Shown one piece after another: positions 18,824 to 56,532 of a stretch of 64,000 bases of DNA. The notes below the pieces were generated by a model. The model was not told the origin of the DNA, made no database searches, and was given only the letters and a program-made list of their open reading frames with translations. Numbering within the stretch: the stretch's first letter is position 1; each line of letters opens with the position of its first letter. This DNA is from Macrostomum lignano. Lineage: Eukaryota. The stretch lies in contig NIVC01000695.1 of assembly GCA_002269645.1 (NCBI GenBank), forward strand, positions 372,001-436,000, in the 5' to 3' direction. The position numbers and the translations under genes are program-made.

Positions 18824-18825
18824 TA

Positions 18826-34927: not shown

Positions 34928-35828
34928 ATCACGAGATCGAGTTGGATCGCTTCTACCGTTGTGTCGCGAAGGGACCCACGAAAGTGTCTGCTATTGTTGA
35001 CGAAAAACTGTTGTCAGAATCGATACAGTGTGTGAGAGCTCTACAATAGCATTCTCATAACTGCTGTGCATTTTGTTATTAGCTATCATAACTATTTTAT
35101 CTGTCTGACTATTTGAGTCGATGTGTATTCTGGAAGTTCATTTGGGATTTGCTACATTTCACAAAGCAAATAAACTTCGGAATGAATTTTGAACGTCTTT
35201 GACTTCTTCTTTATAACCGTTATAGAGTTAGCTAATTATTAAACTTCAACTTATGCATGTAACTCTCCAAACTCTTTAGTGATAATTGCTCACAATCCCC
35301 AGTTCTTACTCGCTGTCAACTAGTCTTATCCACTGAGTTTAGGACCTCACCTGTGACCGCACATAGAAGTTCTATATGAATCAGTGCTGAACTTTCGTAC
35401 ATAACGATTAGAGGTTCGCTTCACACTCTTCTCTTGCTACTCTTCAGTAGGCGATCTCCTATAAAAGACAAATTGGAAATCGCATTGAAAACTTAGACCC
35501 GAATGACGTTTCCTAAGTAGTCATACACACCAGTATTCGCCGGTCTCTCAATAATCGTGAGCTACGATGAGAAAATAATTACATATGATAAGAAGTGATT
35601 AGTCGCATCGGATATTAGCCAACTCTCTAGAGGTTTCCAAGAGGTTGAGAGCCTTAACTTTACATAAAATCTCCCTTTCTTATTTACCCTCACCAATAAA
35701 GTGCCTTCGGGTCTGGGGGATTTCGTCAATGAAGGCGTTAATTCTTTTAAATACGTTGAAGTTCACATCCTCTCAGCTGTTATAAACCGTTAAAACTAAT
35801 TTCAGCACTGGATACCGGTATATCTGCA

Positions 35829-36838
35829 ATGCCAAACGATATCTCCTCACCAGTCTATAACTCGTTGGACCTGTCCGCTGGGAACGTCAAACGGCCAAGG
35901 TAAGATTTGCTACGATCTGATAGCTGTCCAGTCGCCCTGTAATATTACATGTATATGTATGCAGTAAAACTGAAAGATGTTAGGATGTTAAGATACTTTG
36001 ACTTCAATAACTTTCTGCTTAAATATTTACTGTACTCGTATAGTCAGAAATGCGAAAAATTAACTATGCGCCTCGTCCCACAAAATATACTTGTGATTTA
36101 GTTAGCATAGAATCATGATTTTCAACAGTGTCGACAGATGTTGGGCGGCCCGAGGATTCTTATTTAACGCCCACAAAGCATGGCTTCATTATTGGTATTT
36201 TAACCTAGGTAGACATTCGTGCTTAACTACTAAGTTTCTGAAAATTTCATTAGGATGATAGCGAGCAGCATAGATGTGCCTCACTGCACGAATCAAAAAA
36301 GAAGTTTTTTTTTCAATTTACCTACGAATTTTACATAATATTGCTTAAAGTTGGGCAATCAATTTTACTATCTTACATCTTAATATATGCATATGCTAAT
36401 CCAATAAAATAATTCTGCAGTTTCGATAAAGTCCTAGAAGCTGATACTTTGCGGCAGCTCGAATGGGTGGGTGTTCCTGGAGCCCATTACTGTGGCAAAT
36501 TCGATGATATCAAGCCAACTCTAGAACTTATTAGACTGCCCAACGAACAAAAAGGAATTGATGATGGTATGCCGCTTCGTGAGCAAATCAATAACTGTCT
36601 ACTAAAGATTGAGAAATGTAACGCTGGTTACAAAATACACGTAGCCAGGGCGGTCTTTGAAGAAACATTCGGTAATCCGTAAGTTTTACCAGATCTACGT
36701 ACTACTAGTCATGAATAGTGGTATATTCATTATTTGAATTGCACAGACATTGCCAATATTATTTAAGATTTACTAAATATTTCAAAAATAATATTCCATT
36801 GCAGATTGGAGGAGCTACCTTGTGGCTGCATTATTTAA
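35829..36838 (+). CDS. Uncharacterised tandem-family small protein, copy A (142 aa; exons 35829-35899, 36129-36194, 36421-36678, 36805-36838)
   Basis: The spliced product MPNDISSPVYNSLDL...WAARGFLFNAHKAWLHYCFDKVLEADT...GAHYCGKFDDI...GYKIHVARAVF...LPCGCII* is open. All introns are GT-AG, phase 2. Synonymous differences vs copy C support the frame. Confidence 0.75.
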
Positions 36839-37581
36839 ATGGGACACGGACCCGGACAGTTCCTATCCAGTGTACTTTGTTGTTGCTGGTTGTTGTTGAG
36901 ATCTGAGAGCTTATGACGATGCACATTGCGTGTGTCCGACCCAGTTTCAATCGGAACTCCGGGAGCTCTACCGGAATGTCCTTCCATGGAATTTATTTTT
37001 TCATCTTTTTGCAAATTCCTTGGAATTGCATTTGTGTTTAAATGTTATTATTCAACAAAAATAAACACAATGCATGCATTTTTGGAATTACTTTTTTCAT
37101 TGACTCTTTATTTTGGCGGGTATAGAAAACTGTATGATTTATAACTTTAAGTTTCCAATCTCTAGTGGTAACTTTAGGACTTACATACTTTGAGTTTAAT
37201 TCAAAAGTTAAGTGGTCTTTATTCAAAGCTATTAAAGTTAGTATCAGTTGGTATTATCCACTGAGCTGAGGACATCACCTGCAACCACTGACTGGAGTTT
37301 TTTTGGCACACACGATGAGAGATTCGCTTTACACTCTTCTCTCGATACTCTCAATAGGCAAGCTAAAATAAAGTAGCAACTAGAGAAGTTAATATTTGGG
37401 AAGTACGAGCTTACTATTAATATTGCTTTAAAGTGCTAAATCTCCCATTTCAGCAGTCATGGCACCTAGTAACGAATAACCGACGTCACCCGTCACCGAA
37501 ACAGCGCGTTTTTGGCAACACAGGTGCTGCAGCCAACATTATTGAGGATTCATAAATCGACTTCATGACTATTTTGAAGGT

Positions 37582-39595
37582 GGCTCTTCAAGCCTTCTTC
37601 AAGTACGCGGTTCAGGCGCTCCACTCCGGAATTCTTGAGGGTGGTAGAACGGAGTCTGACGATGATGGATGCCATACGCCTTTAGGAAGTCGTTGAACTC
37701 CTGGGAGATGAACTGGGGTCCTCCATCGGTGGTGATTACGCGCGGAATGCCCCAGCGACAAAACAGCGCTATGAGACTCTTGATGATAGTCGCAGACGTC
37801 GCCGAAGAGAGGCAGATCAGTTCGGGCCACTTTGAATGCAGGTCGTGCACACCGAGGATGAAGCGGCAGTTCTGTGGTGCACCCTCATGCAGCTCTCCGA
37901 ACAAGTCGATCTGCAGCTCTGTCCACGGCTCCTTCGGCCACTTGATCGGGGTCAGCACTGTCTGGTGCGGCTTGAAGCTCTTCTCACTGATGATGCACGC
38001 AGAGCAGCTGCTGACGAACCTCTCGATGTCGCCGTCCATTTTGAGCCACCACTCGGTGTCTCGGCAGTGATGCTTGGTTCTGCTGACTCCCTTGTGACCT
38101 TGATGCGCTAAGTCGAGCACTCGCTGACGCAGTTCTTCCGGTATAACGGCGCGAGCTCCCATGGCCAAGCACCTGCCGTTGCTCCAGACAGTCAGATCGT
38201 TCCTTACACTCCAGTAAGGCAGCAGGCGCTCGTCGAGCTTTTTCTTGTCTGGCCAACCGGAAACTGTGAACTCTGCGACTCGTGCCAGGAGCTCTTCCTT
38301 TGAAGTTGCTTCCGCCATTTCGTCCTCGGTGACCACGGTCAGCGTCCGTCTCGGCCAGGAGCACTCTCTGGACTTCCAGATCGTCAGTTGCATCGCCTTC
38401 CGCCGGCTCGGCCGTGACCTAGCAGCGCACGGTGTTCTTGGCATCCGGGACGTACTTGACGGTGAAGGAGTAATTTAACAAACGATCGTTCGTTCGTTAA
38501 CCAGCGATCCAGTCTGAGTGGCCTGTGTCCGCATCCAGATGCTGACAGCAGCGTGGTGAGAGCCTGGTGGTCGATGTGGAGCTCAAACAGTCGGCCGTAG
38601 AGGAAGAAGTTCCAGCGCTCGCAGGCGAAAATGCAGGCTAGGGCTTCCCTCTCGCTTGCGGAGTAGCGGCGCTCCGTAGCACTCAGCGACCGGCTCGCAA
38701 AGGCAACCGGGCGCCATTGACCATCGGAGTCTTGCTGGAGAAGCATCGCACCGAGAGCTGATGCTGAGCTGTCGCAGTTGACGATGATTGGCTGATCTGG
38801 GTCGAAAAACTTGAGGCAAGGTGGCTTGCACACTCCTGTCTTCAGCTGCTCAAAAGCCTGCTGGCACTCGCTCGTCCACTTCCACGGCTCGTCCTTCCTC
38901 AGCAGTTTCATGAGGGGCTCTGCCGTACTGGGGAGGTTAAAATGAAGTTTCCGAAGTACTTTACGACGCCTAGAAACGCAGCCACTTCCTTGGTGCTCGT
39001 TGGCGGCTGTACCTTCTCGATAGCTTCGACATGTGACTGCAACGGGCGGACTCCAAGCGCTCAGCTCATAGCCTAGGAAGTTGATCTTTTCCTGACGCCA
39101 GGTGCACTTGGCCGTATTGATGGTCACGTTGTGCGTCATAAAAGCTTGCAGCACCTTGTTACAGGCGCTTGTCGTGTTCTTCTCTTGATGCCGCGTGCAC
39201 TACGATGTCATCAATAAAGTGCACTGCGCCTTTGATACCACTGAGGATCTTTGCCATCACCTTCTGGAGCGCAGCCGGTGCAGTACTCAGGCCGAAGCAC
39301 ACCCTCCGATTCCGATATAGGCCTCACTCCGTCACGAACGTCGTCAGATTTCTGCAGTACTCGGCCAACTCCAGTTGCAGGTAAGACGAATTCAGGTCCA
39401 ACTTGGAGAAGCATCGTGACCCGGCAAACTCGGCGGAGAGCTATTCAAAGGTCGGAAGTGGGTATCTGTCCGGTATGATGCTCTTATTTGGGCGTCTCAG
39501 GTCGTTGTAGATCCGGATCGAGCCATTCGCCTTTGGCACCACAACTAGGTTTGACACCCAATCTGACGCGTCGACCTCCTTAATGATACCTTGCA
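37582..39595 (-). mobile_element. Degenerate Ty3/Gypsy pol fragment (RT, RNase H, integrase), no LTRs
   Basis: RT: YPLPT, FSKLDL, HFIDDI. RNase H: CDSS..LGAMLLQ, VAFASRSL..ERRYS. Integrase: H-x3-H..CSAC, QIDLFG, TDGGPQF. Frameshifted and truncated at both ends. Confidence 0.92.
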
Positions 39596-39764
39596 GAAGA
39601 ATTCGAGTATCCAGAAGAGTTCGAGTAAGTGTTCACAGAAGCTGTTCATTTCAAGTCACTAATTGAATCATGATATCACCATTAACTGGTTAAAATCTCG
39701 GATATAAAATACTTTTATATATTTATATACTTATCACACACACCTTGCAACTCTGACCTCCTGG

Positions 39765-39866
39765 TAGTAGTAGTATGATATAAGGGGCTGAGTCATCCAA
39801 GCGAGCTGGCGCGCAATGCGCCTGAGCAATAAGGGTGGCGCAGCCCCTTATATCATACTACTACTA
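39765..39866. mobile_element. 102-bp MITE with perfect 26-bp TIRs
   Basis: TAGTAGTAGTATGATATAAGGGGCTG and its exact reverse complement. An identical copy lies at 48193-48294. Confidence 0.8.
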
Positions 39867-39870
39867 ACAG

Positions 39871-40590
39871 TCTCGACAGATGTTGGGCGGCCAGAGGATT
39901 CTTAAATTAACGCACACAAAGCATGGCTTCATTATTGGTATTTTAACCTAGGTTCATGCTTAACTACTAAGTTTCTGATAATTTCATTAGACCGATAGCT
40001 ATCAGCATAGATGTGCCTCACTGCAACAATCAAAAAAAGTTTTTTTCAATTTACCTAAGAATTTTACATAATATTGCTTAAAGTTGGGCAATCAATTTTA
40101 CTATCTTACATCGTAATATATGGATATGCCGATCCAATAAAATAATTCTGCAGCTTCTAGGAAGTCCTACAAGCTGATACTTTGCGGCAGCTCGAATGGC
40201 TGGATGTTCCTGGAGCCCATTACTGTGGAAAATTCGATGATATCAAGCCAATTCTAAAACTGATCAAACTGTCTGAAGAGATAAAAAATGGCATTGATAA
40301 TGGCATGTCGTTACGTACTCGAATCAACAATTTTCAACTTAAAATTGAGAAATGCAACGATCGTTACAAAATCCACGTAGCCAGGGTGCTCGGCGGAGTC
40401 AGCTTTGCTAATCCGTAAGTTTTACCAGATCTACATACTAGTCATGAATATTCATTATTGGAGTAGCACAGACATTGCCAATAGTATTTAAGATTTAATA
40501 AATATTTAAATATTCCTTTTCAGATTGACCCAGCTACCGTGTGGTTGCGCCATTAAAACATGCAACCAAGTTTCTGTTAGACAGAAATAA
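39871..40590 (+). pseudogene. Tandem-family copy B (pseudogene)
   Basis: Lacks exon 1. Exon 2 has a +1 insertion and exon 3 begins with an in-frame TAG. The rest is homologous to copy A. Confidence 0.75.
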
Positions 40591-40708
40591 AAAATAACCG
40601 ATCGAATGGTTAATGTTTTGGAAGTCCAATTTTTCTTTGAATTATTTTTGGCGCGAATAGAAAGTTTTAAATTATTATAGCTCTAAATTAAGCGCGTATC
40701 TTCCTCTC

Positions 40709-40963
40709 CAGGGGCGTCCCCATCCATTATGGTAGGGGGCCACAAAGCCAAGCATTCCACATGACTAAATTTCAATATTGTTTTAAGGAATCGGTGTTGT
40801 TAACACTCATTATAGCGCCACAGGCACTCATTTTTGCGCCACATTCAGGCACGAATTTTGGCGTTCTGAAGCAAATTTACTGATTACCATATCGGGTCAC
40901 AAAGTGGGGCGGAGGAACAAATCATTATCATGCCCCATAGCTTTTGCAGGAGCGACGCCCCTG
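40709..40963. mobile_element. 255-bp MITE (hAT-like)
   Basis: Perfect 10-bp TIR CAGGGGCGTC / GACGCCCCTG. A second copy lies at 49179-49432. Confidence 0.7.
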
Positions 40964-42429
40964 TCAATCTCCAAACTGTTTAGTGGTAAAAATGATTATG
41001 CATATTTTAAGTTCTATTCAAAAGTTTAGTGGTCTGGTTAATCAAAGTTACTAAATTCACTATCAATTTCTATAAGAAACATGAACCACTTAGTGTGGTA
41101 AAACCTGGATTTTGAATTCCTCAAAGTCCTCAGTTCTTACTCGCTGTCAACTGGTATTATCCGCTGAGCTGTTTTTTGTACACACGATAAGAGATTCGCT
41201 TCACTCTCTTCTCTTGGTACTCTCAGTAGGCAGCTATAATAAAGTATAAATTAGAGGATCGTTCGTGTTTGGGAAGTGCAAGCATACCAATTAATTCGAA
41301 ATACGAAATCTCCCATTTCAGCGGTCATGTCACCTACTCACGAATGATTGACGTCACTCTGTCGCCGACACATCGAGTTTGCGACATCACAGACGCTGCA
41401 AGTCTGCAACCTGTAATTGAAGTTAATTTGGCGATATATAAGTCTTGCGTTCTAGACACACAATGCAGTAGTGCATTTTAAGTGAATTATTTTTAATATT
41501 TTTTATCGCATTCGTTGAGTATGGATTTTCAGCACGAAATGAGCCACTTTCCTGTACTATACATACTACTGCCAGTAGCCATGGAAGTTTATTCTACCAT
41601 TTTCTTCCCTGCCTTCCCCATTTTTTCCTTCCCTCTCCCCCATCTCTTTTTATCCTTTGTCTACCCCTAGTCTACGGTAGCAAAATAAAGAGCATACATA
41701 CCAGTCATGAATATCCGTTGTTTGAGTTGTTACCAACTATTACCAACTATTATACAAATATACAAATATTACCAGCAATAGGAATGTAATCCAATATACT
41801 AAAATGGTTAGTAAGTGTCTGTGGTTACAGGAGGGATAGCATATTGCCTAAGCTGTTAGAGTATAATACAGTTAGTGTGTGATAGATACACGTAGCAACA
41901 TAGCGAGCCAATTGATAAGATAAGATATGCGGCATGATAAATCAACCTTTGCATAATTTACTATCCTTTGCAGATGACGACAAGGTGGCGCCGTCATCCG
42001 GTCATACCTTTAACTGGAACTTTCATTAAAAAGGCAGGTGGTCAAAGTTACTAAAGTTACTAGCAGTTACTGTACTATTAGATACGTGAACTCCTAAGTG
42101 TATCCAAATCTCAAAAATTCCTCACAATCAAAAAATCTTATAAAATAGAAATTGGAAATCGCATAGAAAAATCCGGGTCCGGATGAGGTTTATTAAGTAG
42201 TCCTATGCATGCACACCAGTATTTGCCGGCCTCCCACTAATGGTGAAGCAGCATGAGAAGCTAATTGGGAATTAAGACAAGAGCAATAAATTTGAAGTGC
42301 AAAATTTCCCATTTCAGAAAACAAGTCACCTACTGTGGTCACGAATGGCCGACGTCACTCTGTCACGATCGACACTGTGCGTGCTCGACATCACAGGCGA
42401 TGCAAGCAGCATTGAAGTAGAGAGGATAC

Positions 42430-42620
42430 AGACTTCTGGGTCACCGGGCGAGCCACCATCCACCTATTGGGCTCTCCGGCCAAGGAACCACCCCTGCGGA
42501 CACCGGCACTTGCGGATTTCCCTGCGCGACACCGCAGCACCAGGTTAGCGAAAGTGGCGGCAACGCCTCCTCGCTGCATCCGGATGCCCGGATCCCCTGA
42601 AGCTGAGTCAAGTAAGTCAA
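42430..42620 (+). mobile_element. 3' terminal fragment of a related LOA-like LINE
   Basis: Ends GCCTCCTCGCTG...CCCTGAAGCTGAGTCAAGTAAGTC, matching the 3' end of the full-length element (GCCTCCCCGCTG...CCCTGCAGCTAAGTCAAGTAAGT). Confidence 0.6.
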
Positions 42621-43050
42621 TGCCATTGATGCATTCAATCCTACTTGCGACAACCAGATTGAGACCTCCAGCTATGACAGCCCCATCTATGAAGCTCTCA
42701 ACGCAAGGTAGTCTTTGCTTTCAAGGCCGCTTGAAGATCCAACTCTTACAGTAATGGACCTCGGCGTGCGATCAGACGGGAGGCAGATGGCGTCTTGCAC
42801 CCTTGTCAATGCGATACGGCAACGCAATCTGACTTACTCGAAATGTGAACATCTAACTTTATTCAGCGAATAGCACAATAAGTCAAGCAGACAAAATTAT
42901 CAGCTGAATTTAAACTTCAATTAATTTTTATTATTTACTTAGACTTAACAGAATCGCGATTTGTATAAGAGCTCAGCTCAAATATCAGGAATTCCATTGG
43001 GTATTACTCCTATATGTTAACTCTGCTTTTATCCCTGACGCTTTTCACAG

Positions 43051-43302
43051 GAACAATGCCAACTGCATGAATCTGCGCCGTCCAGATTTCTTCAAGACGA
43101 AGATGACCGTGAGTTTCTAATGCAAGGCCTGCGCGAGGGATTTTGCCTGATCACCGAAACTCGTTCCGCCAATCCGATGTCGAGAATTATGTATGGCTCA
43201 TGCAAGCTGCATGAACGAGAGCAAGGTCGAGAAGCAGATCTACTGCTACCGTCGCGCCGCAAAGAGACCCACGAAAGTGTCTGTCAGTGTAGAAACATTT
43301 GA
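43051..43302 (+). mobile_element. Degenerate DIRS/Ngaro-like (YR retrotransposon) RT N-terminal fragment
   Basis: LQDEDDREFLMQGLREGF, then VENY and KVEKQI in shifted frames. Duplicated at 50646-50897. Confidence 0.5.
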
Positions 43303-44232
43303 CGAAAAACTGTAAGAGTTGTAAGAATCGATCCACTTTTCAGATAAAAATAGTTACAATACAGCTGTGCTGGGTGAGAGATCTTAGTACGATGACATGC
43401 TCGAAACTTCTGTGCATTTAGTTAGAATAGTAAAGCCTCGCTATTTCATCTGGGAGACAATGTGTACAGTATTTTGGAACTACATTCAGGCTTTGCTGAT
43501 TTTTACAAAGCAAATAAACTGCAGAATGAATTTTGGAACGTCTTTGACTTCTTCTTTTCGGCGGATATAGCTCGTAGATAGAGTTAGCTAATTATTAAAC
43601 TTTAACTTACGCGTGTGACTCTCCAAACTCTTTAGTGATAATTGCTCACAATCCTCAGCTCTTACTCGCTGTCAACTAGTCTTATATGCACTGAGTTTAG
43701 GACCTCACCTGTGACCACACACAAGTTCTAATTTGACTATCGGTGTAGAACTTTTCGTACACACGATTAGAGATTCGCTTCACTCTTGCTACTCTTCAGT
43801 AGGCGATTTCCTAAGATAGAAATCGGAAGTCGCATTGAAAAACTCGGTCCTTAATGAAGTTTCCTATGTATAGTTCTATGCATGCACACCAGTATTAGCC
43901 GGCCTCTCAATCGCTAATGGTGAACCAGGGGGAGAAACTAATTAGATATGAAAAGAAATAAATAGTGGCATCCTATTGTCGCCAACTCTATAGGTCACCG
44001 CTTCCATTTAAGAGCCTTAAGTTTACATAAAATCCCCTTTTCTCATTTATCCCCACCAAAATAGCCCCTAGGGACTGTGGGATTTCGTCAATGAAGGCGT
44101 TTCTTTTTTCTTTAGAAGAGAATTTTTCGCGTTGGTTCTATTTTTACTTGTTGCTTATAAAATGCTTTGGAGTTCACTTCCTCTCCTGATATGAGCAGTT
44201 AAAACTAATTTCAGCACTGCCGCATAACAGCA

Positions 44233-45219
44233 ATGCCAAATGATACCTCCTCGCCAGTGTACAACTGGTTGGAATTGTACTATGGAAACGTCCAACAACC
44301 AAGGTAAGATTTTCTATGACCTGATGGCTATCCAGTCGCCCTAGAATTACATGTATATTTATGCAGTAAAACTGAAAGATGTTAAGATGTTAAGATACTT
44401 TGACCTCGATAACATTCTACTTAATTATCTATAGTCAGAAATGAGAAAATTACCGATGCGCCTCGTCCCACAAAACATATTTGTGGTTTAGTTAGCATAG
44501 AATCAGAGTAAAGATTTTCAATAGTCTCGACAGACGTTGGGCGGCCCGAGGATTTTTAATTAACGCCCACGAAGCATGGTTTTATTATTGGTATTTTACC
44601 ATAGGCATTCATGCTTAACTACTAAGTTTCTGATAATTTCATTATGTCGATCGCGATCAGCATATAGATGTGTCACACACTGCACCAATCAAAAATAACG
44701 TTTTTTCAATTAAACTACTAAGAATTTTATATAAGATTGCTTAAAATTTGCCAATCAATTTTACTATCTTACATCTTAATACATGGATATGCCGATCCAA
44801 TAAATATTTCTGCAGCTTCGAGGAAGTCCTGGCTTCTGATACTGAGCGTAAGCTGAAACGGCAGGATTGTCCTGGAGCCCATTACTGTGGCAAATTAAAT
44901 GATATCACGCAACTTCTAAACGTTATTGGTCTGCCGAACGAAAAAATTGGCTATGGTAGGCCACTACGGTTGCTAACAAACGATTTTCAACTGACCATTA
45001 AAAAGATTGCTGATGGGTATGAAATCCACCTTGCTAAGGCCGTATATGGCCGAACGTTTTCAGAATGGTAAGTTTTACTGGAGCTACATTACTAGTCTAA
45101 TAAATATTTATTATTTGAATTGCACAGATATTGCCAATAGTATTTAAGATGTACTAAATATAAAAACAATAATATTCCATTTCAGATCGGTCACGCTTCC
45201 TTGCGGTTGCGCTATGTAG
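44233..45219 (+). CDS. Tandem-family copy C (129 aa to a splice-junction TGA; exons 44233-44303, 44525-44590, 44816-45067, 45186-45219)
   Basis: Open spliced frame MPNDTSSPVYNWLEL...GAHYCGKLNDI...AKAVYGRTFSE, then TG|A, then in-frame SVTLPCGCAM*. Confidence 0.72.
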
Positions 45220-47582
45220 ATTGACTCGTACCCGGACAGTTCCTGTTGAGATCTGAGAGCTAATGACGATGCACATTGCGTGTGTCTGACCCAGTTTCGA
45301 TCGGATCTCCGGGAGCTCTACCGGAATGTCTTCCATGGAATTTATTTATCCATCTTTTTGCACATTCCATGGAAATGCATTGCATTCGTGTTGTTGCTGT
45401 ATTCTACAGAAATAAACACAAATAATTTTTTGAAAGAATTATTTTTCGTTGACTCTTCATTTTGGCGGGTATAGAAAATTGTTTGATTTATAACTTTAAT
45501 CTCTTTCCAATCTCTGAAGTGGTAACTATGAAAATAGGACTATCAATAGGACTTACATACTTACTTTTGATTTAAAAGTTTAGCGGTCTTTAGTCGAAGC
45601 TACTAAAGTTAGTGTCAGCTGGTCTTATCCACTGAGCTGAGGACCTCACTAACTACCTATGCAGAAATTGTGGAGATTCCCTTCACACTCTTCTCTCGCT
45701 ACTCTCAGTAGGCAAGCTAAAATAAATTAGAAACTAAGGAAATTAATTTTTGGGAAGTACGAGCTTACTATAAATATTGTTTTAAAGTGCGTAATCTCCC
45801 ATTTTCAGCGTTCGTCACCCATGCAGTCACGAGTCACGAATGACCGACGTCACTCCGTCACCGAAACAGTGCGTTTTCGACAACACAGGCGCTGTAACCA
45901 ACTTGATGACTGTTTTGGAGACATAAAGCTTCCGTTTTAAACACACAATGCAACAGTGCATTTTAAGTGCATTAATTCTTTTATGATTTCTTATCGCAAT
46001 TCAATGAGGACTGAATTTCGAGCCCCTTTCCCTCTACTGTACATACTACTGCCAGTAGCGATGGCATTTTCTTCCACCATTTTCTTCCCATTTCTTCCCC
46101 ATTTTTCCGTTGTCTACGGTAGCAAAACAAATAGCATATACATACTATTCATGAATATCTGTTGTTTGAGTTGCACAAATATTGCCAACAATAATAATGT
46201 AAATAAGATTGTCTAAATATTCAACGGTAATTATTTCATTGTACTGACAGCATATTGCCCAATCTACATATGCTTTGCTGTTAGAGTAGAATTCCCCATT
46301 TTGCCGATTTCATACTGCATCAAATGTCTTACACTTGCTTTTGCTGGACCTCTTTTTCTTCAGCTGTGCTTAGTTTATTTATTTATTCTTTATTATCTTT
46401 TATCTTTAAGCTTCCGGATGGTCAGCAGAGCTGACTATGTACCAACAGCCTTTACTGCTGGTAATCTTTTAGAGTCTATGGTAAAAGAAAAGTTATGTGC
46501 TGCACAGTAGCCGTTCCTGCCGAGCATGGTCAGCAGCGCTGATCATACGAAAAATGGGTGAAAAAAGTCCTACATATCTGCAATGGAATGCAGCGACTCG
46601 GTTTCAGTATTCTCTGTGATGACATCATCAGTCTCAGAATTTCCATGCAAAATTTCTATGGTTGTAGCTGATTTACTTTTCAATAAACTGATATAACTGA
46701 TATACTCTTATTAAGGAGGTGCAGTGCTTTCTCTTTCAAAAATGCCTGTTTGCAGAATTTAAAGTGAACTGTAGTGTCTATTGCTAGATATCGAGTGTAC
46801 GCACTGCATAATCTATTCAGAGAGCATTAAGTGAAATGTACATTTTGAGACTGCTTTTTTCGACCCTAGATTTGTCCAAGCCAAGTATAAATGCTCCATT
46901 CTCGGCTAGAAAGGCTTTGCACAGCGGCGCATTAAGATTCTAGCTATAGTCTATGGCCAGCCCAGCTGACCATGTCGGCAGGAACGGAGATTTTGTATTT
47001 CTACGAGCGTAGCTCCAGCGCGAAAAGGATCCTTCAGTATGCTTCACTCATGTCGCCTTGTTGCCTAGTTGGGGGGGGGGGGCAGTTGAGCTATACATCT
47101 TTCTTTGCGTTATGGATGTATTTGCATCGATATATATAGCAAGTAGCAAGCAAGTAAGCTTTTTGTGCCGCGCTGGGCTGCTCTGCCCTAGCACGCTCAT
47201 TTTTTCTCCCATTGCCTTTATTCATCCCTATTTTTAATCACCGTGTTTAATTAACTACTGTGGAATTGAGTAAATCAAAATAAATTCTGTTTGCCACAGG
47301 GGCCCTCCTTCGCCCTTGCCGCCTCTTCGCCTTCCTTTCTTGGCGTCGTTTGCTAAAGATCGAAAATTTTAATGCCAGAAGTCACGAGAGTCGGCTTTGA
47401 GCCGCTTTTAAGCATTTGCAAAACACTTGGCAAACTAGATGCATTAAATGTATTGCGTATTGTATAATTTTGCCTCAATTAATAGATATTTATTTTCAGT
47501 TTCAACTATTATACACTTCCAGCTTTTATTAAAATATTTATTATTATCAAAAAATAATAAAAGCTGGCTGATTGGCTGAAGT

Positions 47583-48054
47583 ATGTATCCAGAAGAGTTC
47601 GAGTATCCAGAAGAGTTCGAGTATCCAGAAGAGTTCGAGTATCCAGAAGAGTTCGAGTATCCAGAAGAGTTCGAGTACCCAGAAGAGTTCGAGTATCCAG
47701 AAGAGTTCGAGTACCCAGAAGAGTTCGAGTATCCAGAAGAGTTCGAGTATCCAGAAGAGTTCGAGTATCCAGAAGAGTTCGAGTATCCAGAAGAGTTCGA
47801 GTATCCAGAAGAGTTCGAGTATCCAGAAGAGTTCGAGTATCCAGAAGAGTTCGAGTATCCAGAAGAGTTCGAGTATCCAGAAGAGTTCGAGTATCCAGAA
47901 GAGTTCGAGTATCCAGAAGAGTTCGAGTATCCAGAAGAGTTCGAGTATCCAGAAGAGTTCGAGTATCCAGAAGAGTTCGAGTACCCAGAAGAGTTCGAGT
48001 ATCCAGAAGAGTTCGAGTATCCAGACGAGTTCGAGTATCCAGACGAGTTCGAGT
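47583..48054. repeat. 18-nt minisatellite (GAGTATCCAGAAGAGTTC), ~26 copies
   Basis: Tandem units. Shorter paralogous arrays lie at ~39594-39628 (~2 units) and 54998-55090 (~5 units). Confidence 0.97.
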
Positions 48055-48192
48055 AAGTGTTCACAGAAGCTGTTCATTTCAAGTCACTAATTGAATCATG
48101 ATATCACCATTAACTGGTTAAAATCTCGGATATAAAATACTTCTATATATTTATATACTTATCACACACACCTTGCAACTCTGACCTCCTGG

Positions 48193-48294
48193 TAGTAGTA
48201 GTATGATATAAGGGGCTGAGTCATCCAAGCGAGCTGGCGCGCAATGCGCCTGAGCAATAAGGGTGGCGCAGCCCCTTATATCATACTACTACTA
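48193..48294. mobile_element. 102-bp MITE with perfect 26-bp TIRs (second copy)
   Basis: Identical to 39765-39866 and in the same flanking context, so it was duplicated together with the segment. Confidence 0.8.
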
Positions 48295-48298
48295 ACAG

Positions 48299-49060
48299 TC
48301 TCGACAGATGTTGGGCGGCCCGAGGATTCTTAATTAACGCACACAAAGCATGGCTTCATTATTGGTATTGTACCCTAGGTAGACATTCATGCTTAACTAC
48401 TAAGTTTCTGATAATTTCATTAGGCCGATAGCTATCAGCATAGATGTGCCACACTGCAACAATCAAAAAAAAAGTTTTTTTTTTCAATTTACCTACGAAT
48501 TTTACATAATATTGCTTAAATTTGGGCAATCAATTTTACTATCTTACATCGTAATATATGGATATAATTTTATAAAATAAAATAGATTATAAAATATTTT
48601 ATTTTATGATTATAAAATAATTCTGCAGATTCGAGAAAGTCCTACAAGCTGATACTTTGCGGCAGCTCGAATGGCTGGATGTTCCTGGAGCCCATTACTG
48701 TGGAAAATTCGATGATATCAAGCCAATTCTAAAACTGATCAAACTGTTTTGTCCGGACAGCACTTCATCGTTGCATGTCGTTACGTGCTCGAATCAACAA
48801 TTTTCAACTTAAAATTGAGAAATGCAACGATCGTTACAAAATCCACGTAGCCAGGGTGGTCGGCGGAGTCAGCTTTGCTAATCCGTAAGTTTTACCAGAT
48901 CTACATACTAGTCATGAATATTCATTATTGGAGTAGCACAGACATTGCCAATAGTATTTAAGATTTAATAAATATTCAAATATTCCTTTTCAGATTGACC
49001 CAGCTACCGTGTGGTTGCGCCATTAAAACATGCAACCAAGTTTCTGTTAGACAGAAATAA
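48299..49060 (+). pseudogene. Tandem-family copy D (pseudogene)
   Basis: Lacks exon 1. The exon 2/3 junction forms TGA, and a 25-nt replacement of 30 nt in exon 3 shifts the frame. Confidence 0.75.
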
Positions 49061-49178
49061 AAAATAACCGATCGAATGGTTAATGTTTTGGAAGTCCAAT
49101 TTTTCTTTGAATTATTTTTGGCGGAAAAAGAAAGTTTTAAATTATTATAGCTCTAAATTAAGCGCGTATCTTCCTCTC

Positions 49179-49432
49179 CAGGGGCGTCCCCATCCATTAT
49201 GGTAGGGGGCCACAAAGCCAAGCATTCCACATGACTAAATTTCAATATTGTTTTAAGGAATCGGTGTTGTTAACACTCATTATAGCGCCGCAGGCACTCA
49301 TTTTTGCGCCACATTCAGGCACGCATTTTGGCGTTCTGAAGCAAATTTACTGATTTCCATATCGCGTCACAAAGTGTGGCGGAGGAACAAATCATTGGCA
49401 TGCCCCATAGCTTTTGCAGGAGCGACGCCCCT
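49179..49432. mobile_element. 255-bp MITE (second copy)
   Basis: Near-identical to 40709-40963. Confidence 0.7.
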
Positions 49433-50394
49433 CTCTCACAAAACTCCTTAGTGATAAAAAAGGACTTAAATATTTTAAGTTCTATTCAAAAGTTAAGTGG
49501 TCTTTGGTAAAAGTGATTAAAGTTTCCTATCAGTTTCTATTAGAAACATGAACCACTTAGTGTGTCCAAACCTTAATTTTGAATTCCTCGAAGTCCTCAG
49601 TTCATAATCGCTGTCAACTGGTATTATCCGCTGAGCTGTTTTTTGTACACACGATAAGAGATTCGCTTCACACTCTTCTCTTGCTAGTCTCAGTAGGCAG
49701 CTAAAATAAAGTATAAATTAGAGGACCGTTCATGTTTGGGAAGTGCAAGCATACCAATTAATTTGAAATACGAAATCTCCCATTTCAGCGGTCATGTCAC
49801 CTACTCACGAATGATTGACGTCACACGAAATGATTTTCAGCACGAAATGAGCCACTTTCCTGTACTATACATACTACTGCCAATAGCGGTGGAAGTTTCT
49901 TCTACCATTTTCTTCCCTGCCTTCCCCATTTTCCTTCCCTCTCCCCCATCTGTTTTTATCCTTTGTCTACCCCTAGTCTACGGTAGCAAAATAAAGAGCA
50001 TACATACCAGTCATGAATATCCGTTGTTTGAGTTGTTACCAACTATTACCAACTATTATACAAATATACAAATATTAACAGCAATAGGAATGTAATCCAA
50101 TATACTAAAATGGTTTATGAGTGTCTGTGGTTACAGGGGGGATAGCATATTGCCTAAGCAAAAAAAACACGGCACACTGGCTGTCTCTACAGATCCCCAA
50201 CCCCCCTACCCCATTGCTCAACTTCAAATCGAAAGAGCTAGTTCATTTAGCTTGTTTAGCAGAACTGCCGCCTTGCAACACAGGGATAAAAATGGGGGGT
50301 GTTCTATTATAGCTTCCAGTCCGTATCTCTAGAAGTCCCTGGTCAGACTAAGCGTGAGAGAGAGGGTTGGAATTGTCAGCCTCCCGCTCAACTC

Positions 50395-53300
50395 AACCCT
50401 TGTCAATGCGATACGGCAACGAAATCTGACTTACTCGAAATGTGAAAATCTAACTTTATTCAGCGAATAGCACAATAAGTCATGCAGACAAAATTATCAG
50501 CTGAATTTAATATTATTTTTTTTTATTATTTACTTAGACTTAGCAGAATCGCGATTTGTATAAGAGCTCAGCTCAAATATCAGGAATTCCATTGGGTATT
50601 ACTCCTATATGTTAACTCTGCTTTTATCCCTGACGCTTTTCACAGGAACAATGCCAACTGCATGAATCTGCGCCGTCCAGATTTCTTCAAGACGAAGATG
50701 ACCGTGAGTTTCTAATGCAAGGCCTGCGCGAGGGATTTTGCCTGATCACCGAAACTCGTTCCGCCAATCCGATGTCGAGAATTATGTATGGCTCATGCAA
50801 GCTGCATGAACGAGAGCAAGGTCGAGAAGCAGATCTACTGCTACCGTCGCGCCGCAAAGAGACCCACGAAAGTGTCTGTCAGTGTAGAAACATTTGACGA
50901 AAAACTGTAAGAGTTGTAAGAATCGATCCACTTTTCAGATAAAAATAGTTACAATACAGCTGTGCTGGGTGAGAGATCTTAGTACGATGACATGCTCGAA
51001 ACTTCTGTGCATTTAGTTAGAATAGTAAAGCCTCGCTATTTCATCTGGGAGACAATGTGTACAGTATTTTGGAACTACATTCAGGCTTTGCTGATTTTTA
51101 CAAAGCAAATAAACTGCAGAATGAATTTTGGAACGTCTTTGACTTCTTCTTTTCGGCGGATATAGCTCGTAGATAGAGTTAGCTAATTATTAAACTTTAA
51201 CTTACGCGTGTGACTCTCCAAACTCTTTAGTGATAATTGCTCACAATCCTCAGCTCTTACTCGCTGTCAACTAGTCTTATATGCACTGAGTTTAGGACCT
51301 CACCTGTGACCACACACAAGTTCTAATTTGACTATCGGTGTAGAACTTTTCGTACACACGATTAGAGATTCGCTTCACTCTTGCTACTCTTCAGTAGGCG
51401 ATTTCCTAAGATAGAAATCGGAAGTCGCATTGAAAAACTCGGTCCTTAATGAAGTTTCCTATGTATAGTTCTATGCATGCACACCAGTATTAGCCGGCCT
51501 CTCAATCGCTAATGGTGAACCAGGGGGAGAAACTAATTAGATATGAAAAGAAATAAATAGTGGCATCCTATTGTCGCCAACTCTATAGGTCACCGCTTCC
51601 ATTTAAGAGCCTTAAGTTTACATAAAATCCCCTTTTCTCATTTATCCCCACCAAAATAGCCCCTAGGGACTGTGGGATTTCGTCAATGAAGGCGTTTCTT
51701 TTTTCTTTAGAAGAGAATTTTTCGCGTTGGTTCTATTTTTACTTGTTGCTTATAAAATGCTTTGGAGTTCACTTCCTCTCCTGATATGAGCAGTTAAAAC
51801 TAATTTCAGCACTGCCGCATAACAGCAATGCCAAATGATACCTCCTCGCCAGTGTACAACTGGTTGGAATTGTACTATGGGAACGTCCAACAACCAAGGT
51901 AAGATTTTCTATGACCTGATGGCTATCCAGTCGCCCTAGAATTACATGTATATTTATGCAGTAAAACTGAAAGATGTTAAGATGTTAAGATACTTTGACC
52001 TCGATAACATTCTACTTAATTATCTATAGTCAGAAATGAGAAAATTACCGATGCGCCTCGTCCCACAAAACATATTTGTGGTTTAGTTAGCATAGAATCA
52101 GAGTAAAGATTTTCAATAGTCTCGACAGACGTTGGGCGGCCCGAGGATTTTTAATTAACGCCCACGAAGCATGGTTTTATTATTGGTATTTTACCATAGG
52201 CATTCATGCTTAACTACTAAGTTTCTGATAATTTCATTATGTCGATCGCGATCAGCATATAGATGTGTCACACACTGCACCAATCAAAAATAACGTTTTT
52301 TCAATTAAACTACTAAGAATTTTATATAAGATTGCTTAAAATTTGCCAATCAATTTTACTATCTTACATCTTAATACATGGATATGCCGATCCAATAAAT
52401 ATTTCTGCAGCTTCGAGGAAGTCCTGGCTTCTGATACTGAGCGTAAGCTGAAACGGCAGGATTGTCCTGGAGCCCATTACTGTGGCAAATTAAATGATAT
52501 CACGCAACTTCTAAACGTTATTGGTCTGCCGAACGAAAAAATTGGCTATGGTAGGCCACTACGGTTGCTAACAAACGATTTTCAACTGACCATTAAAAAG
52601 ATTGCTGATGGGTATGAAATCCACCTTGCTAAGGCCGTATATGGCCGAACGTTTTCAGAATGGTAAGTTTTACTGGAGCTACATTACTAGTCTAATAAAT
52701 ATTTATTATTTGAATTGCACAGATATTGCCAATAGTATTTAAGATGTACTAAATATAAAAAAAATAATATTCCATTTCAGATCGGTCACGCTTCCTTGCG
52801 GTTGCGCTATGTAGATTGACTCGTACCCGGACAGTTCCTGTTGAGATCTGAGAGCTAATGACGATGCACATTGCGTGTGTCTGACCCAGTTTCGATCGGA
52901 TCTCCGGGAGCTCTACCGGAATGTCTTCCATGGAATTTATTTATCCATCTTTTTGCACATTCCATGGAACTGCATTGCATTCGTGTTCTTGCTGTATTCT
53001 ACAGAAATAAACGCAAATAATTTTTTGAAAGAATTATTTTTCGTTGACTCTTCATTTTGGCGGGTATAGAAAATTGTTTGATTTATAACTTTAATCTCTT
53101 TCCAATCCAACTATGAAAATAGGACTATCAATAGGACTTACATACTTACTTTTGATTTAAAAGTTTAGCGGTCTTTAGTCGAAGCTACTAAAGTTAGTGT
53201 CAGCTGGTCTTATCCACTGAGCTGAGGACCTCACTAACTACCTATGCAGAAATTGTGGAGATTCCCTTCACACTCTTCTCTCGCTACTCTCAGTAGGCAA

Positions 53301-55090
53301 GCTAAAATAAATTAGAAACTAAGGAAATTAATTTTTGGGAAGTACGAGCTTACTATAAATATTGTTTTAAAGTGCGTAATCTCCCATTTTCAGCGTTCGT
53401 CACCCATGCAGTCACGAGTCACGAATGACCGACGTCACTCCGTCACCGAAACAGTGCGTTTTCGACAACACAGGCGCTGTAACCAACTTGATGACTGTTT
53501 TGGAGACATAAAGCTTCCGTTTTAAACACACAATGCAACAGTGCATTTTAAGTGCATTAATTCTTTTATGATTTCTTATCGCAATTCAATGAGGACTGAA
53601 TTTCGAGCCCCTTTCCCTCTACTGTACATACTACTGCCAGTAGCGATGGCATTTTCTTCCACCATTTTCTTCCCATTTCTTCCCCATTTTTCCGTTGTCT
53701 ACGGTAGCAAAATAAATAGCATATACATACTATTCATGAATATCTGTTGTTTGAGTTGCACAAATATTGCCAACAATAATAATGTAAATAAGATTGTCTA
53801 AATATTCAACGGTAATTATTTCATTGTACTGACAGCATATTGCCCAATCTACATATGCTTTGCTGTTAGAGTAGAATTCCCCATTTTGCCGATTTCATAC
53901 TGCATCAAATGTCTTACACTTGCTTTTGCTGGACCTCTTTTTCTTCAGCTGTGCTTAGTTTATTTATTTATTCTTTATTATCTTTTATCTTTAAGCTTCC
54001 GGATGGTCAGCAGAGCTGACTATGTACCAACAGCCTTTACTGCTGGTAATCTTTTAGAGTCTATGGTAAAAGAAAAGTTATGTGCTGCACAGTAGCCGTT
54101 CCTGCCGAGCATGGTCAGCAGCGCTGATCATACGAAAAATGGGTGAAAAAAGTCCTACATATCTGCAATGGAATGCAGCGACTCGGTTTCAGTATTCTCT
54201 GTGATGACATCATCAGTCTCAGAATTTCCATGCAAAATTTCTATGGTTGTAGCTGATTTACTTTTCAATAAACTGATATAACTGATATACTCTTATTAAG
54301 GAGGTGCAGTGCTTTCTCTTTCAAAAATGCCTGTTTGCAGAATTTAAAGTGAACTGTAGTGTCTATTGCTAGATATCGAGTGTACGCACTGCATAATCTA
54401 TTCAGAGAGCATTAAGTGAAATTTACATTTTGAGACTGCTTTTTTCGACCCTAGATTTGTCCAAGCCAAGTATAAATGCTCCATTCTCGGCTAGAAAGGC
54501 TTTGCACAGCGGCGCATTAAGATTCTAGCTATAGTCTATGGTCAGCTCAGCTGGAACGGAGCTTTTGCATTTCTAGCTCCGGCGCGAAAAGGATCCTTCA
54601 GTATGCTTAACTCATGTCATTCACTCACTCATTTTTTTTCTCCCATTGCCTTTATTCGTCCCTATTTTAAAATACCGTTTTTAATTAACTACTGTGGAAT
54701 TGAGTAAATCAAAATACTCAGTATGTGACAAGGGCCCTCCTTCGCCCTTGCCGCCTCTTTGCCTTCCTTTCTTGGCGTCGTTTGCTAAAGATCGAAAATT
54801 TTAATGCCAGAAGTCACGAGAGTCGGCTTTGGGCCGCTTTTAAGCATATGCAAAACACTTAGCAAACTAGATGCATTAAATTTATTGCGTATTGTATAAT
54901 TTTGCCTCAATTAATAGATATTTATTTTCGTTTCCAACTATTCTACATTCCCAGCTTTTATCAAAAAATAATAAAAGCTGGCTGATTGGCTGAATTATGT
55001 ATCCAGACGAGTTCGAGTATCCAGACGAGTTCGAGTATCCAGAAGAGTTCGAGTATCCAGAAGAGTTCGAGTATCCAGAAGAGTTCGAGT
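50395..55090 (+). repeat. Recent segmental duplicate of ~42790-48055 (offset ~7.6 kb)
   Basis: Identical ORF translations at offset 7595 (43120/50715, 44748/52343) and 7585 (45956/53541, 46301/53886). In addition, ~39600-41810 is duplicated at ~48030-50140. Confidence 0.92.
51828..52814 (+). CDS. Tandem-family copy E (near-identical to C; exons 51828-51898, 52120-52185, 52411-52662, 52781-52814)
   Basis: Same splice sites, same open frame and same TG|A junction as copy C. Confidence 0.72.
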
Positions 55091-55239
55091 AAGTGTTCAC
55101 ATAAGCTGTCATTTCAAGTCACTAATTATATCCCCATTAACTAGCTGATAACTAGCTATCAGCATAGATGTGTCACACTGCACCAATCAAAAATGAAGTT
55201 TTTTTTTTCAATTAAACTACTACGAAGTTTATATAAGAT

Positions 55240-56042
55240 TGTCACGTTATTTGATGTTGGCCGTGACCCTTAAAAGGGCCGTTTTAGTCCCAAAATAAGT
55301 TGAAGTCAACTTAGGCGAAGTGGATGGTGTAGCGGAGCACTTGGCGATAAAGGCAGGAACTGCCGTAGTTGTCTTTATTGTTAATATCAGTATTAAGTTT
55401 GGTTGTTACTGGCAATAAACAGACTATAGCTTTCTGGGCACTGGCGGCTGCAACAATGGGTTCTTTTAAGATAAATTGGATGTGAGTTCAAGCGACAGAC
55501 GAGTGAGGTAATGGCGACGTAACGTGATGATCAATGGCAATGAGTACAGAAGAGGCAGTGAGACGTAGTAGGCAGATGAGCAGTGGCGAAGTTGGCGTCA
55601 GTCGTGGCGTGAGGCAAGGAGGCTCGAGGCAGCCAGACAGAGAGAAGGAAAACAAGGCCGTAAAAACACACACAAGGCCAAGGACAGGCCGGGAGGAAGA
55701 GAGAAGCACAGATAAGGACAGGAGTGAGGAGTGCCCGCCGCCAGGCGGGGTTTAATAAAGGAGCGCAGAGGGGGGGTAGCGCGAAGCACGAGTGATTTCA
55801 TTGGCTGGCGAGAGAACTTAAAATTATCGATCGTGCCAATTTTATACGGTCGCGAGAGAGGATAGCAAAATATACAGTGAATTAGAAATTGCCACAAAAT
55901 CGTTGGCCATTACTACAAGTAAACGTCGCAATAAACGAATGGAAAAGTTTAGTTGAAACGGTGAAACTGAAGGGTTGAATGACTATGGAGAACAGCAGTC
56001 CAACGGCCCTTTTCAAGACCACCTTAAACTGACAACGTCACA
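55240..56042. mobile_element. 803-bp TGT...ACA insertion: Ginger-like non-autonomous DNA transposon or solo LTR
   Basis: 4-bp TSD AGAT at 55236-55239 and 56043-56046. The empty site TATAAGATTGCTT is seen in paralogous introns. Imperfect ~44-bp TIR including AAAAGGGCCGTT / AACGGCCCTTTT. Confidence 0.8.
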
Positions 56043-56124
56043 AGATTGCTTAAAATTTGCCAATCAATTTACTATCTTACATCTTAATACATGGATATGC
56101 CGATCCAATTAAATATTTCTGCAG

Positions 56125-56532
56125 CTTCGAGGAAGTCCTGGCTTATGATACTGAGCGTGAGCTGAAACAGCTGGATGATATTGGAGACCATTACTGTGGC
56201 AAATTAAATGATATCACGCAACTTCTAAACACTATTGGTCTGCCCAACGAAAAAAATGGCATTGATAAACTTGTGCCACTACGGTTGCTAACAAAGAATT
56301 TTCAACTGAACAATAAAAATATTGATGATGGGTATGAAATCCACCTGGCTAGGGCCGTATATGGCCTAACGTTTTCAGACTGGTAAGTTTTACTGGATCT
56401 AAATTACTAGTCTAATGAATATTTATTATTTGAATTGCACAGATATTGCCAATAGTATTTAAGATGTACTAAATATAAAAAATAATATTCCATTTCAGAT
56501 CGGTCACGCTTCCTTGCGGTTGTGCCATGTAG
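56125..56532 (+). pseudogene. Tandem-family copy F (exons 3-4 only: 56125-56382, 56499-56532)
   Basis: Exon 3 is open (FEEVLAYDT..HYCGKLNDI..ARAVYGLTFSD), then TG|A, then SVTLPCGCAM*. Exons 1-2 were not found upstream. Confidence 0.6.

Follow-up and report, generated by a model that had tools for sequence, protein, structure and literature searches.

Whether a cluster of small open reading frames (ORFs) in the genome of the flatworm Macrostomum lignano constitutes a functional gene family, and what keeps its copies apart, is the question raised by the locus analyzed here. The window, i.e., a stretch of 64,000 nucleotides (nt) of contig NIVC01000695.1 (assembly GCA_002269645.1, positions 372,001 to 436,000 of the forward strand), contains six tandem copies, designated A to F, of a gene for a small protein, which had been noticed in a first-pass annotation made from the sequence alone. 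The copies represent a genuine protein-coding gene family that is held in the available databases for M. lignano alone. The account favored here is given a probability of about 0.55 as a whole: an orphan family with three coding exons would have grown by way of a minisatellite, selection would keep its protein variants distinct, and its function would be linked to a genetic conflict.

Six Tandem Copies of an Orphan Gene

The window was searched by a six-frame motif scan, by self-BLAST and by tblastn with each exon. Six copies were found, all on the forward strand, in an array of 27 kb with minisatellites at its bounds. Exon-wise tblastn revealed no seventh copy within the 64 kb, including the part past the right-hand of the two repeats that bracket the array. 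The number of copies and all the motifs quoted in the first-pass annotation were confirmed (Table 1). Exon borders were taken from a six-way DNA alignment and anchor searches, and the proposed boundaries, with exons of 71, 66 and 252–258 nt, AG/GT borders and introns all in phase 2, were recovered in the alignment.

Copy A is the sole fully intact copy and, in the three-exon gene model described below, the only one with a full-length open product (120 aa). Copies B, D and F are 5'-truncated pseudogenes, as had been suspected, with missing exons, a TAG codon, an insertion and a frameshifting patch among their defects. The layout of copy E is that of copy C shifted by +7595, and the two proteins are identical, the genes differing by one synonymous change. 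As had also been noted, A and C are strongly diverged, with about half of their residues in common, while frame and splice sites are kept. Intact, early-stopping and truncated copies stand together with a recent block duplication, and the array is a taxonomically restricted tandem family under birth and death, as first proposed.

A search of a collection of 5.8 billion proteins returned four proteins in a first pass, all of them UniRef entries of M. lignano. An exhaustive HMMER search of 1.84 billion cluster representatives with the family profile added two family members and one SRCR protein, and the profile search of the 5.8-billion collection gave exactly six clusters (P0001 to P0006), all from M. 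lignano. A relationship to the SRCR protein (P0007, E = 9e-4) was rejected, since the match comprises 34 residues around HYCG alone, whereas an SRCR domain spans roughly 100 aa with at least six conserved Cys, and the Pfam SRCR model finds nothing in the family. Pfam gave no match for A, C or any family member, even at E <= 10, and the PDB, searched by sequence and by profile, gave nothing under E = 0.1. The PDB matches to an internalin (E = 0.11; one stretch, KLNDITQLLNVIGLPNEKIG, resembling a leucine-rich repeat) and to Tas3 (E = 0.68) were regarded as chance; a leucine-rich repeat protein was dismissed, the stretch being single and the Pfam models for this repeat not being matched. An AlphaFold2 model from a five-sequence alignment had a predicted local distance difference test score (pLDDT) of 52.7, and its best Foldseek match against the PDB (E = 0.26) is meaningless. 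A scan of viral contigs and one of metagenomes with a conserved exon pattern yielded no matches, exact-sequence look-ups of five possible isoforms found none, and a literature search by the UniProt accessions found no paper. The family is therefore an orphan within the content of the searched databases, as the first-pass annotation had it, with no recognizable domain and no match to a known family or transposon by sequence, profile or predicted structure.

The family is previously undescribed and is present in UniProt solely as misnamed fragments. The models P0002, P0004 (n = 2) and P0006 are exact spliced pieces of A, C/E and F, respectively, which could be rebuilt base for base. They use three different internal donors (in copy C, GG/GTATGA directly after 45016; a slash marks the splice site throughout), avoid a stop codon at the last splice junction and omit the conserved Y.IH.A.AV segment. 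These models look like ab initio predictions. The six automatic names, i.e., glutaredoxin, envelope-like, TGF-beta, peptidase A1, CCG and guanylate cyclase "domain-containing" protein, conflict with each other and have no Pfam support.

Exon Structure of the Gene

The first-pass annotation had proposed four exons. Its second exon, termed "exon 2" here, is doubtful. Identity between A and C in "exon 2" (89%) equals that in intron 1 (89%), as compared to 66–79% in the other exons. The seven differences between A and C comprise six non-synonymous and one synonymous change, and the ratio of non-synonymous to synonymous substitution rates (dN/dS, omega) is 1.6, with 0.24 for exon 1 and 0.48 for the main exon. 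The donor of "exon 2" (TTG/GTATTT) is weak in comparison with AAG/GTAAGA and CC/GTAAGT, and in copy D its 3' junction would read TG/A. All three UniProt models that hold exon 1 (P0001, P0004 and P0005) join it straight to the main exon, and a 50-aa ORF around "exon 2" has no word triplet in common with any of the 5.8 billion proteins. "Exon 2" has an open frame in copies A, C, D and E, and since it is 66 nt long and in frame, it could still be a cassette exon. Probably, it is part of intron 1. With good confidence, the gene is thus predicted to have three coding exons (71, about 255 and 34 nt), both introns in phase 2 and a product of about 120 aa.

The distance from a conserved TTTCAG to the ATG is 23 nt in A and 18 nt in C, and these lengths differ modulo 3. 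Because the frame changes between A and C, this stretch of 18–23 nt is read as 5' untranslated region (5'UTR) and MPND as the true start. TTTCAG is possibly a trans-splice acceptor before the 5'UTR.

Coding Exons Diverge More than Introns and Flanks

Within the 2.4-kb repeat unit, conservation is lowest in the coding exons. Between A and C, identity was 66% in the main exon and 65% in the tail, while introns and flanks were 82–89% and 81–85% identical, respectively. The proportions of non-synonymous (pN) and synonymous (pS) differences were 0.27 and 0.48, as compared to an intron difference of 0.15. The same was seen in the young pair C-F (pN 0.12, pS 0.08, intron difference 0.015), in which 3 of 198 intron sites, 27 of 252 main exon sites and 9 of 105 sites of the 3' untranslated region (3'UTR) differed. 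Both pN and pS exceeded the intron difference in four pairs. For pN, this was significant in all four (Fisher p 2e-3 to 2e-11); for pS, p values covered the same range in A-C, A-B and B-C, with p = 0.025 in C-F. Fast coding divergence, as claimed in the first-pass annotation, was thus borne out by the exon and intron identities and by both proportions.

The divergence is not free of constraint. In the old pairs, omega was 0.44 (A-C), 0.43 (A-B) and 0.38 (B-C), with pN below pS (Fisher p = 3e-4 to 7e-3); the ratio is therefore not near 1 throughout the family. The young pair C-F had an omega of 2.65, which is not significant. Because the non-coding parts stay similar and the exons differ, yet dN/dS is about 0.4 in the old pairs, selection appears to favor or keep distinct protein variants. 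Short conversion tracts would homogenize non-coding DNA, and tracts that homogenize the coding exons would be removed by selection while both partners are functional. Mosaic paralogues are present: P0001 resembles C over exon 1 and the initial 18 codons of the main exon but B from there on, and P0003 switches from C-like to B-like further downstream than P0001.

In the flanks of copy A, two non-coding blocks (35268–35326 in the 5' flank and 37111–37165 in the 3' flank) stand out from their surroundings (about 80% identity) by being 95–97% identical in A and C. They could have a regulatory role or be tracts of recent conversion.

Several points speak against the favored account. First, once the differences are polarised against the other subfamily, an intact copy and its truncated partner carry derived changes in near-equal numbers (24 in A and 25 in B; 14 in C and 13 in F). 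Second, divergence at synonymous sites, too, greatly exceeds that of introns. Given both observations, classical positive selection on the live copy alone is an insufficient explanation. Third, as the main alternative, paralogues at other genomic loci could have produced the pattern by patchy conversion. Fourth, assembly of a hidden polyploid may partly account for C and E being 98.7% identical. Fifth, the absence of "exon 2" from the UniProt models is weak evidence, since these look like ab initio predictions. Sixth, the restriction to M. lignano holds only as far as the databases reach: genomes and transcriptomes of other Macrostomum species are apparently outside the protein collections, as even M. 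lignano appears in them via UniRef alone, so that a species-specific and a genus-specific family look the same. Finally, the zinc site and the germline role suggested below draw on residue conservation and a genus-wide prior only.

The strongest competing explanation, although an unlikely one, is a decaying family without present function, in which the exon excess is a by-product of patchy conversion from diverged paralogues in a repetitive, polyploid genome. It would account for the symmetric derived changes and the mosaic paralogues, for five of the six copies being truncated, broken or ending early, and for a divergence that is patchy in the defunct pair B-D as well (1% to 6.5%, depending on the segment). 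Retroelements and foldbacks lie inside the array, and no transcript-derived family protein was seen in the protein collections. However, copy A retains a complete ORF, its start codon, two strong donors and a poly(A) signal, and omega is significantly below 1 across a long divergence. Across the copies, the LPCGC codons differ at synonymous third positions only, and the differences in the Y.IH.A.AV segment are likewise all synonymous. In the dead pair B-D, moreover, the exon excess is absent outside one replaced patch, which points to a functional cause of the excess.

Comparison with Known Systems

Diversity-keeping selection combined with homogenized non-coding DNA has possible counterparts in other animals. 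The Morpheus (NPIP) family in primate segmental duplications, reportedly described by Johnson et al. in Nature in 2001, is likewise lineage-restricted, lacks a known domain, spread by recent segmental duplication and has exons far more diverged than introns and flanks. The animals and the proteins are unrelated, however, and the flatworm family differs in its omega below 1 in old pairs, its raised synonymous sites and its small, local array. In class I and II genes of the major histocompatibility complex (MHC), introns are said to be homogenized while exon diversity is maintained (Cereb, Hughes and Yang, 1997). Similarity of non-coding parts via recombination or conversion, coding variants that are kept apart and mosaic exons are common to both systems, but the MHC variants are alleles of cell-surface receptors, whereas the flatworm copies are paralogues of a small soluble protein. 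"Accelerated" exons have reportedly been found in venom phospholipase A2 and conotoxin genes (Nakashima et al., 1993; Duda and Palumbi, 1999), in which paralogue introns are also better conserved than coding exons. Those genes encode secreted toxins of known fold with dN/dS above 1; neither applies to the flatworm family, apart from the non-significant value above 1 in the C-F pair.

The SpTransformer (Sp185/333) genes of the purple sea urchin have mosaic coding sequences as well; their products are secreted immune proteins with a leader peptide, encoded by two exons, unlike the flatworm family with its lack of a signal peptide (PMC10887614). Fast-evolving reproduction-related genes of Macrostomum (PMC8662610, PMC10092323) come from the same genus, evolve fast and have homologues undetected outside the species; membership of the present family in that class is a guess.

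Properties and Possible Function of the Protein

The product of about 120 aa has a mass of 13 kDa and a pI of about 5–6. No signal peptide was found, the N-terminus (MPNDISSPVYNSLDLSAGNVKRPS) being hydrophilic, and no hydrophobic or membrane segment, the maximum Kyte-Doolittle value over 15 residues being 0.6. The protein is most likely soluble. A secreted effector, toxin or seminal-fluid protein was rejected because of the missing N-terminal signal peptide and the lack of a conserved upstream coding exon.

Exon translations were aligned with X at junction codons. The invariant residues include H47, Y48, C49, G50, Y96, I98, H99, L116, P117, C118, G119 and C120 (P0001 numbering), so that the stretches H-Y-C-G, Y-x-I-H and L-P-C-G-C never vary, and five His/Cys positions among 120 residues (H47, C49, H99, C118 and C120) are invariant. 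A small zinc site formed by these residues is plausible. The low-confidence AlphaFold2 model, with helices followed by three strands, is too poor for ligand geometry.

Lipidation of the terminal CGCxx had been considered in the first-pass annotation. In the tails PCGCII, PCGCAM and PCGCAI, Cys stands at -5 and -3. The ends are therefore no canonical CaaX boxes, as had been stated, and CaaX prenylation was rejected because no Cys is four residues from the C-terminus. A Rab-type geranylgeranylated end was rejected as well, since two residues follow CXC and there is no Ras/Rab Pfam match. In vitro, certain C(x)3X and Cxx termini are substrates of farnesyltransferase, so that lipidation of the tail is conceivable, although unsupported.

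In Macrostomum, the highest rates of evolution, and the most frequent lack of detectable homologues, are seen in reproduction-related genes, those of the testis region especially (PMC8662610, PMC10092323). Distinct protein variants amid similar non-coding DNA are, moreover, typical of proteins in a genetic conflict. The tentative best guess is therefore a small binding protein inside cells of the germline or in sperm, driven by such a conflict and possibly holding a zinc ion by its invariant His and Cys residues, rather than a secreted immune effector. Ranked behind it, with low confidence, come a role in immunity or stress, one concerning a selfish element and the lack of a present function. 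It is rather doubtful that this flatworm-specific intracellular family, which would then be structurally new and have paralogues actively kept different in their exons, would form a diversity-maintaining recognition or antagonist system in a conflict among gametes or with a selfish element or a virus, with translation in the C-type branch perhaps running on through the junction UGA.

Similarly doubtful is the proposal of the first-pass annotation, i.e., four-exon immune or stress effectors tied to a neighboring IAP gene and perhaps lipid-anchored by the CGCxx tail. An IAP-like gene with two BIR domains and a RING domain is indeed present at 23283–26378, the family shows rapid turnover and exon divergence, and "exon 2" is open in four copies with AG/GT borders. 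Short tandem repeats and segmental duplications occur within the array, as in the sea-urchin SpTransformer immune genes (PMC10887614). Against this proposal, the IAP-like gene lies about 9.5 kb upstream, beyond satellite arrays, and nothing links both genes; adjacency is no evidence of a common function in an animal genome. The protein has neither a signal peptide nor a hydrophobic segment, "exon 2" has no coding signature, annotated model or database match, and the tail ends in neither CaaX nor a terminal CXC.

Growth of the Array

Self-BLAST and Tandem Repeats Finder resolved three super-units, (A,B), (C,D) and (E,F), each consisting of a full gene and, about 4.3 kb further on, a 5'-truncated copy. 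An 18-bp minisatellite stands before every truncated copy. The block B..C (39594–47054) recurs as D..E (48022–54618), the B/D sections being 94–96% and the C/E sections 98.7% identical. This duplication joins in the expanded minisatellite, which is a signature of unequal crossing-over. Copy B is nearest to A (84–93%) and copy F to C/E (92%), while B and F have a common downstream flank and upstream minisatellite; such common flanks despite different affinities suggest that neighbors converted each other. The whole array is enclosed by two repeats in direct orientation that are 73–86% identical to each other.

From these relationships, the array may have arisen from three units of a full gene plus a truncated copy, would have grown via unequal crossing-over in the 18-bp minisatellite and would have been reshuffled through recombination or gene conversion among paralogues.

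The foldback at the 5' breakpoint of B and D is the source of a sub-threshold Rfam match to "mir-606" (E = 0.0017; 33 bits as compared to a gathering score of 80).

Alternatively, the copies could be cargo or fragments of mobile elements (Helitron-like capture, foldback- or retroelement-mediated) instead of in-place duplicates. This is improbable. The partial copies keep introns, the foldback sits exactly at the breakpoint of two of them, a long terminal repeat (LTR) retroelement fragment lies between A and B, and a long interspersed nuclear element (LINE) is nearby. However, neither inverted nor long terminal repeats were found around the gene unit, and a check with Pfam and transposable-element domains found no transposase or other such domain in it. 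The element fragments in its vicinity are separate insertions. The protein has no transposable-element or viral relatives in the searches, and the super-units form colinear homology blocks with the minisatellite junction expected of unequal crossing-over.

An Early Stop in Copies C, E and F

In C, E and F, a strong donor (ATG/GTAAGT or CTG/GTAAGT) is joined to the acceptor TTTCAG/A, which creates the junction codon TG/A, a stop. It spans 45066–45067 and 45186 in C and 52661–52662 and 52781 in E. Upon canonical splicing, the C/E product in the three-exon model has 107 aa and terminates with ...TFSE, and that of F terminates with ...TFSD. SVTLPCGCAM and a stop (10 codons) remain in frame beyond the junction TGA. 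The description of A, C and E as open in the first-pass annotation thus stands for A, but not for C and E, in which the product is cut before the LPCGC tail. The size of 130–142 aa given there applies solely to A in the four-exon model and not to the three-exon products (120 aa for A, 107 aa for C/E).

A conserved block in the 3'UTR can be modelled as two stems separated by an AUGA/GA internal loop, a fold without statistical support. As a selenocysteine insertion sequence (SECIS) it was rejected: of the features that such elements require (an AUGA quartet, a helix II of 9–11 bp or more, an unpaired AAR and GA), the candidate hairpin lacks the AAR, and Rfam gave no match. Decoding of the junction UGA as selenocysteine, or programmed read-through, with this stem-loop as recoding signal, is very improbable even though the tail behind the TGA is in frame, the two tail substitutions since the C/F split are both synonymous and the 80-nt block is 95–97% conserved and foldable: Rfam SECIS families gave no match at the gathering score or at E <= 10, the upper stem of the hairpin has 7 bp and no unpaired AA(R), the fold is no better than that of shuffles (z = -1.5) and without compensatory pairs, the same element occurs in A, a copy without UGA, the homologous codon in A, B and D is Pro (CCA; Pro also in P0001 and P0003) and not Cys, and two synonymous tail changes are compatible with chance (about 0.07).

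Table 1. Positions in the window of the family copies, their motifs and gene models, and of repeats in and around the array.
Feature	Position	Strand	Remarks
MPND.SSPVYN motif	35829, 44233, 51828	+	six-frame motif scan
WAARGF motif	36142, 39884, 44538, 48312, 52133	+	six-frame motif scan
HYCGK motif	36485, 40218, 44880, 48693, 52475, 56189	+	six-frame motif scan
LPCGC motif	36815, 40534, 45196, 49004, 52791, 56509	+	six-frame motif scan
Copy A, exon 1	35829–35899	+	ATG; MPNDISSPVYNSLDLSAGNVKRP plus 2 nt; donor AAG/GTAAGA
Copy A, "exon 2" of the first-pass annotation	36129–36194	+	VDRCWAARGFLFNAHKAWLHY; donor TTG/GTATTT, weak
Copy A, main coding exon	36421–36678	+	85 codons; HYCGK, PLR, GYKIHVARAV; donor CC/GTAAGT
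Copy A, last coding exon part	36805–36838	+	LEELPCGCII and TAA
Copy A, poly(A) signal AATAAA	near 37060		
Copy B, pseudogene	39871–40590	+	exon 1 absent
Copy B, "exon 2"	39871–39937	+	1-nt insertion
Copy B, main exon	40154–40414	+	codon 2 is TAG
Copy B, tail	40524–40590	+	original stop lost (LPCGCAIKTCNQVSVRQK, then stop)
Copy C	44233–45219	+	exon 1 44233–44303; "exon 2" 44525–44590; main exon 44816–45067; tail 45186–45219
Copy D, pseudogene	48299–49060	+	exon 1 absent; "exon 2" 48299–48364
Copy D, main exon	48629–48884	+	replaced patch of about 30 nt, shifts frame; tail 48994–49060
Copy E	51828–52814	+	51828–51898; ("exon 2" 52120–52185); 52411–52662; 52781–52814
Copy F, 5'-truncated	56125–56532	+	main exon 56125–56382 (open); tail 56499–56532; no other exons; homology to C begins at 56042
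Conserved 3'UTR block	36895–36976 (A), 45245–45326, 52840–52921, 56558–56639	+	95–97% conserved in A, C, E and F
P0002, exon end used before tail exon	36578		copy A; tail then in wrong frame
P0004 (n = 2), exon end used before tail exon	45016 / 52611		copies C and E
P0006, exon end used before tail exon	56283		copy F
18-bp minisatellite (GTATCCAGAAGAGTTCGA)	39593–39630	+	about 2 units; start of B unit
18-bp minisatellite	47585–48055		26 units; junction of the B..C to D..E duplication
18-bp minisatellite	54999–55091		5 units; upstream of copy F
Foldback (palindrome resembling a miniature inverted-repeat transposable element)	39763–39868, 48191–48296		each arm about 27 nt; coincides exactly with the 5' breakpoint of B and of D
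LTR-retrotransposon pol fragment	37599–39154	-	reverse transcriptase-RNase H, integrase; fills A-B spacer; GC-richer than surroundings
Left bracketing direct repeat	34117–34927		about 800 bp; 11-bp minisatellite 34394–34927, 48 units
Right bracketing direct repeat	61412–62304		11-bp minisatellite 61847–62301, 41 units

Neighborhood of the Array

A non-LTR (LINE-type) retrotransposon is located at 15119–20292 on the reverse strand. Its 1236-aa ORF comprises endonuclease, reverse transcriptase and RNase H, and a 488-aa ORF upstream has no Pfam match. The element may be recently active. The pieces of the IAP-like gene (forward strand) comprise BIR in the ORFs 23283–24311 and 24493–25347 and RING in 25800–26378, and they are interleaved with tandem arrays at 23718–24479 and 25280–25782. 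An array at 3656–4467 is 77–78% identical to the former of these two. Just upstream of the IAP-like gene lies a 1.3-kb tandem array (21970–23274) with a period of about 22 bp and units that are 94–96% identical. An Rfam match to the histone 3' stem-loop, below threshold (23.5 bits as compared to a gathering score of 34; E = 0.014) and probably due to chance, was obtained at 55240–55285 on the reverse strand, in the interval from copy E to copy F.

Significance

As a young gene family with fast turnover, the array belongs to a well-known kind of system, ordinary as a type, and no new mechanism is demonstrated by it. Public gene models and names at these loci are unreliable, given six contradictory names and three ad hoc internal donors, and the sole intact gene, copy A, is represented by a fragmentary model with a frame-shifted tail. 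If the family is expressed, it would be a compact, tractable case of a young animal gene family being born, shuffled and lost; apart from this, it is one among many orphan families of a repeat-rich genome. The processes on view would be minisatellite-mediated unequal crossing-over, 5' truncation at a foldback site and homogenization that spares exons, in a model flatworm with RNA interference, transgenesis and about 100 congeneric transcriptomes.

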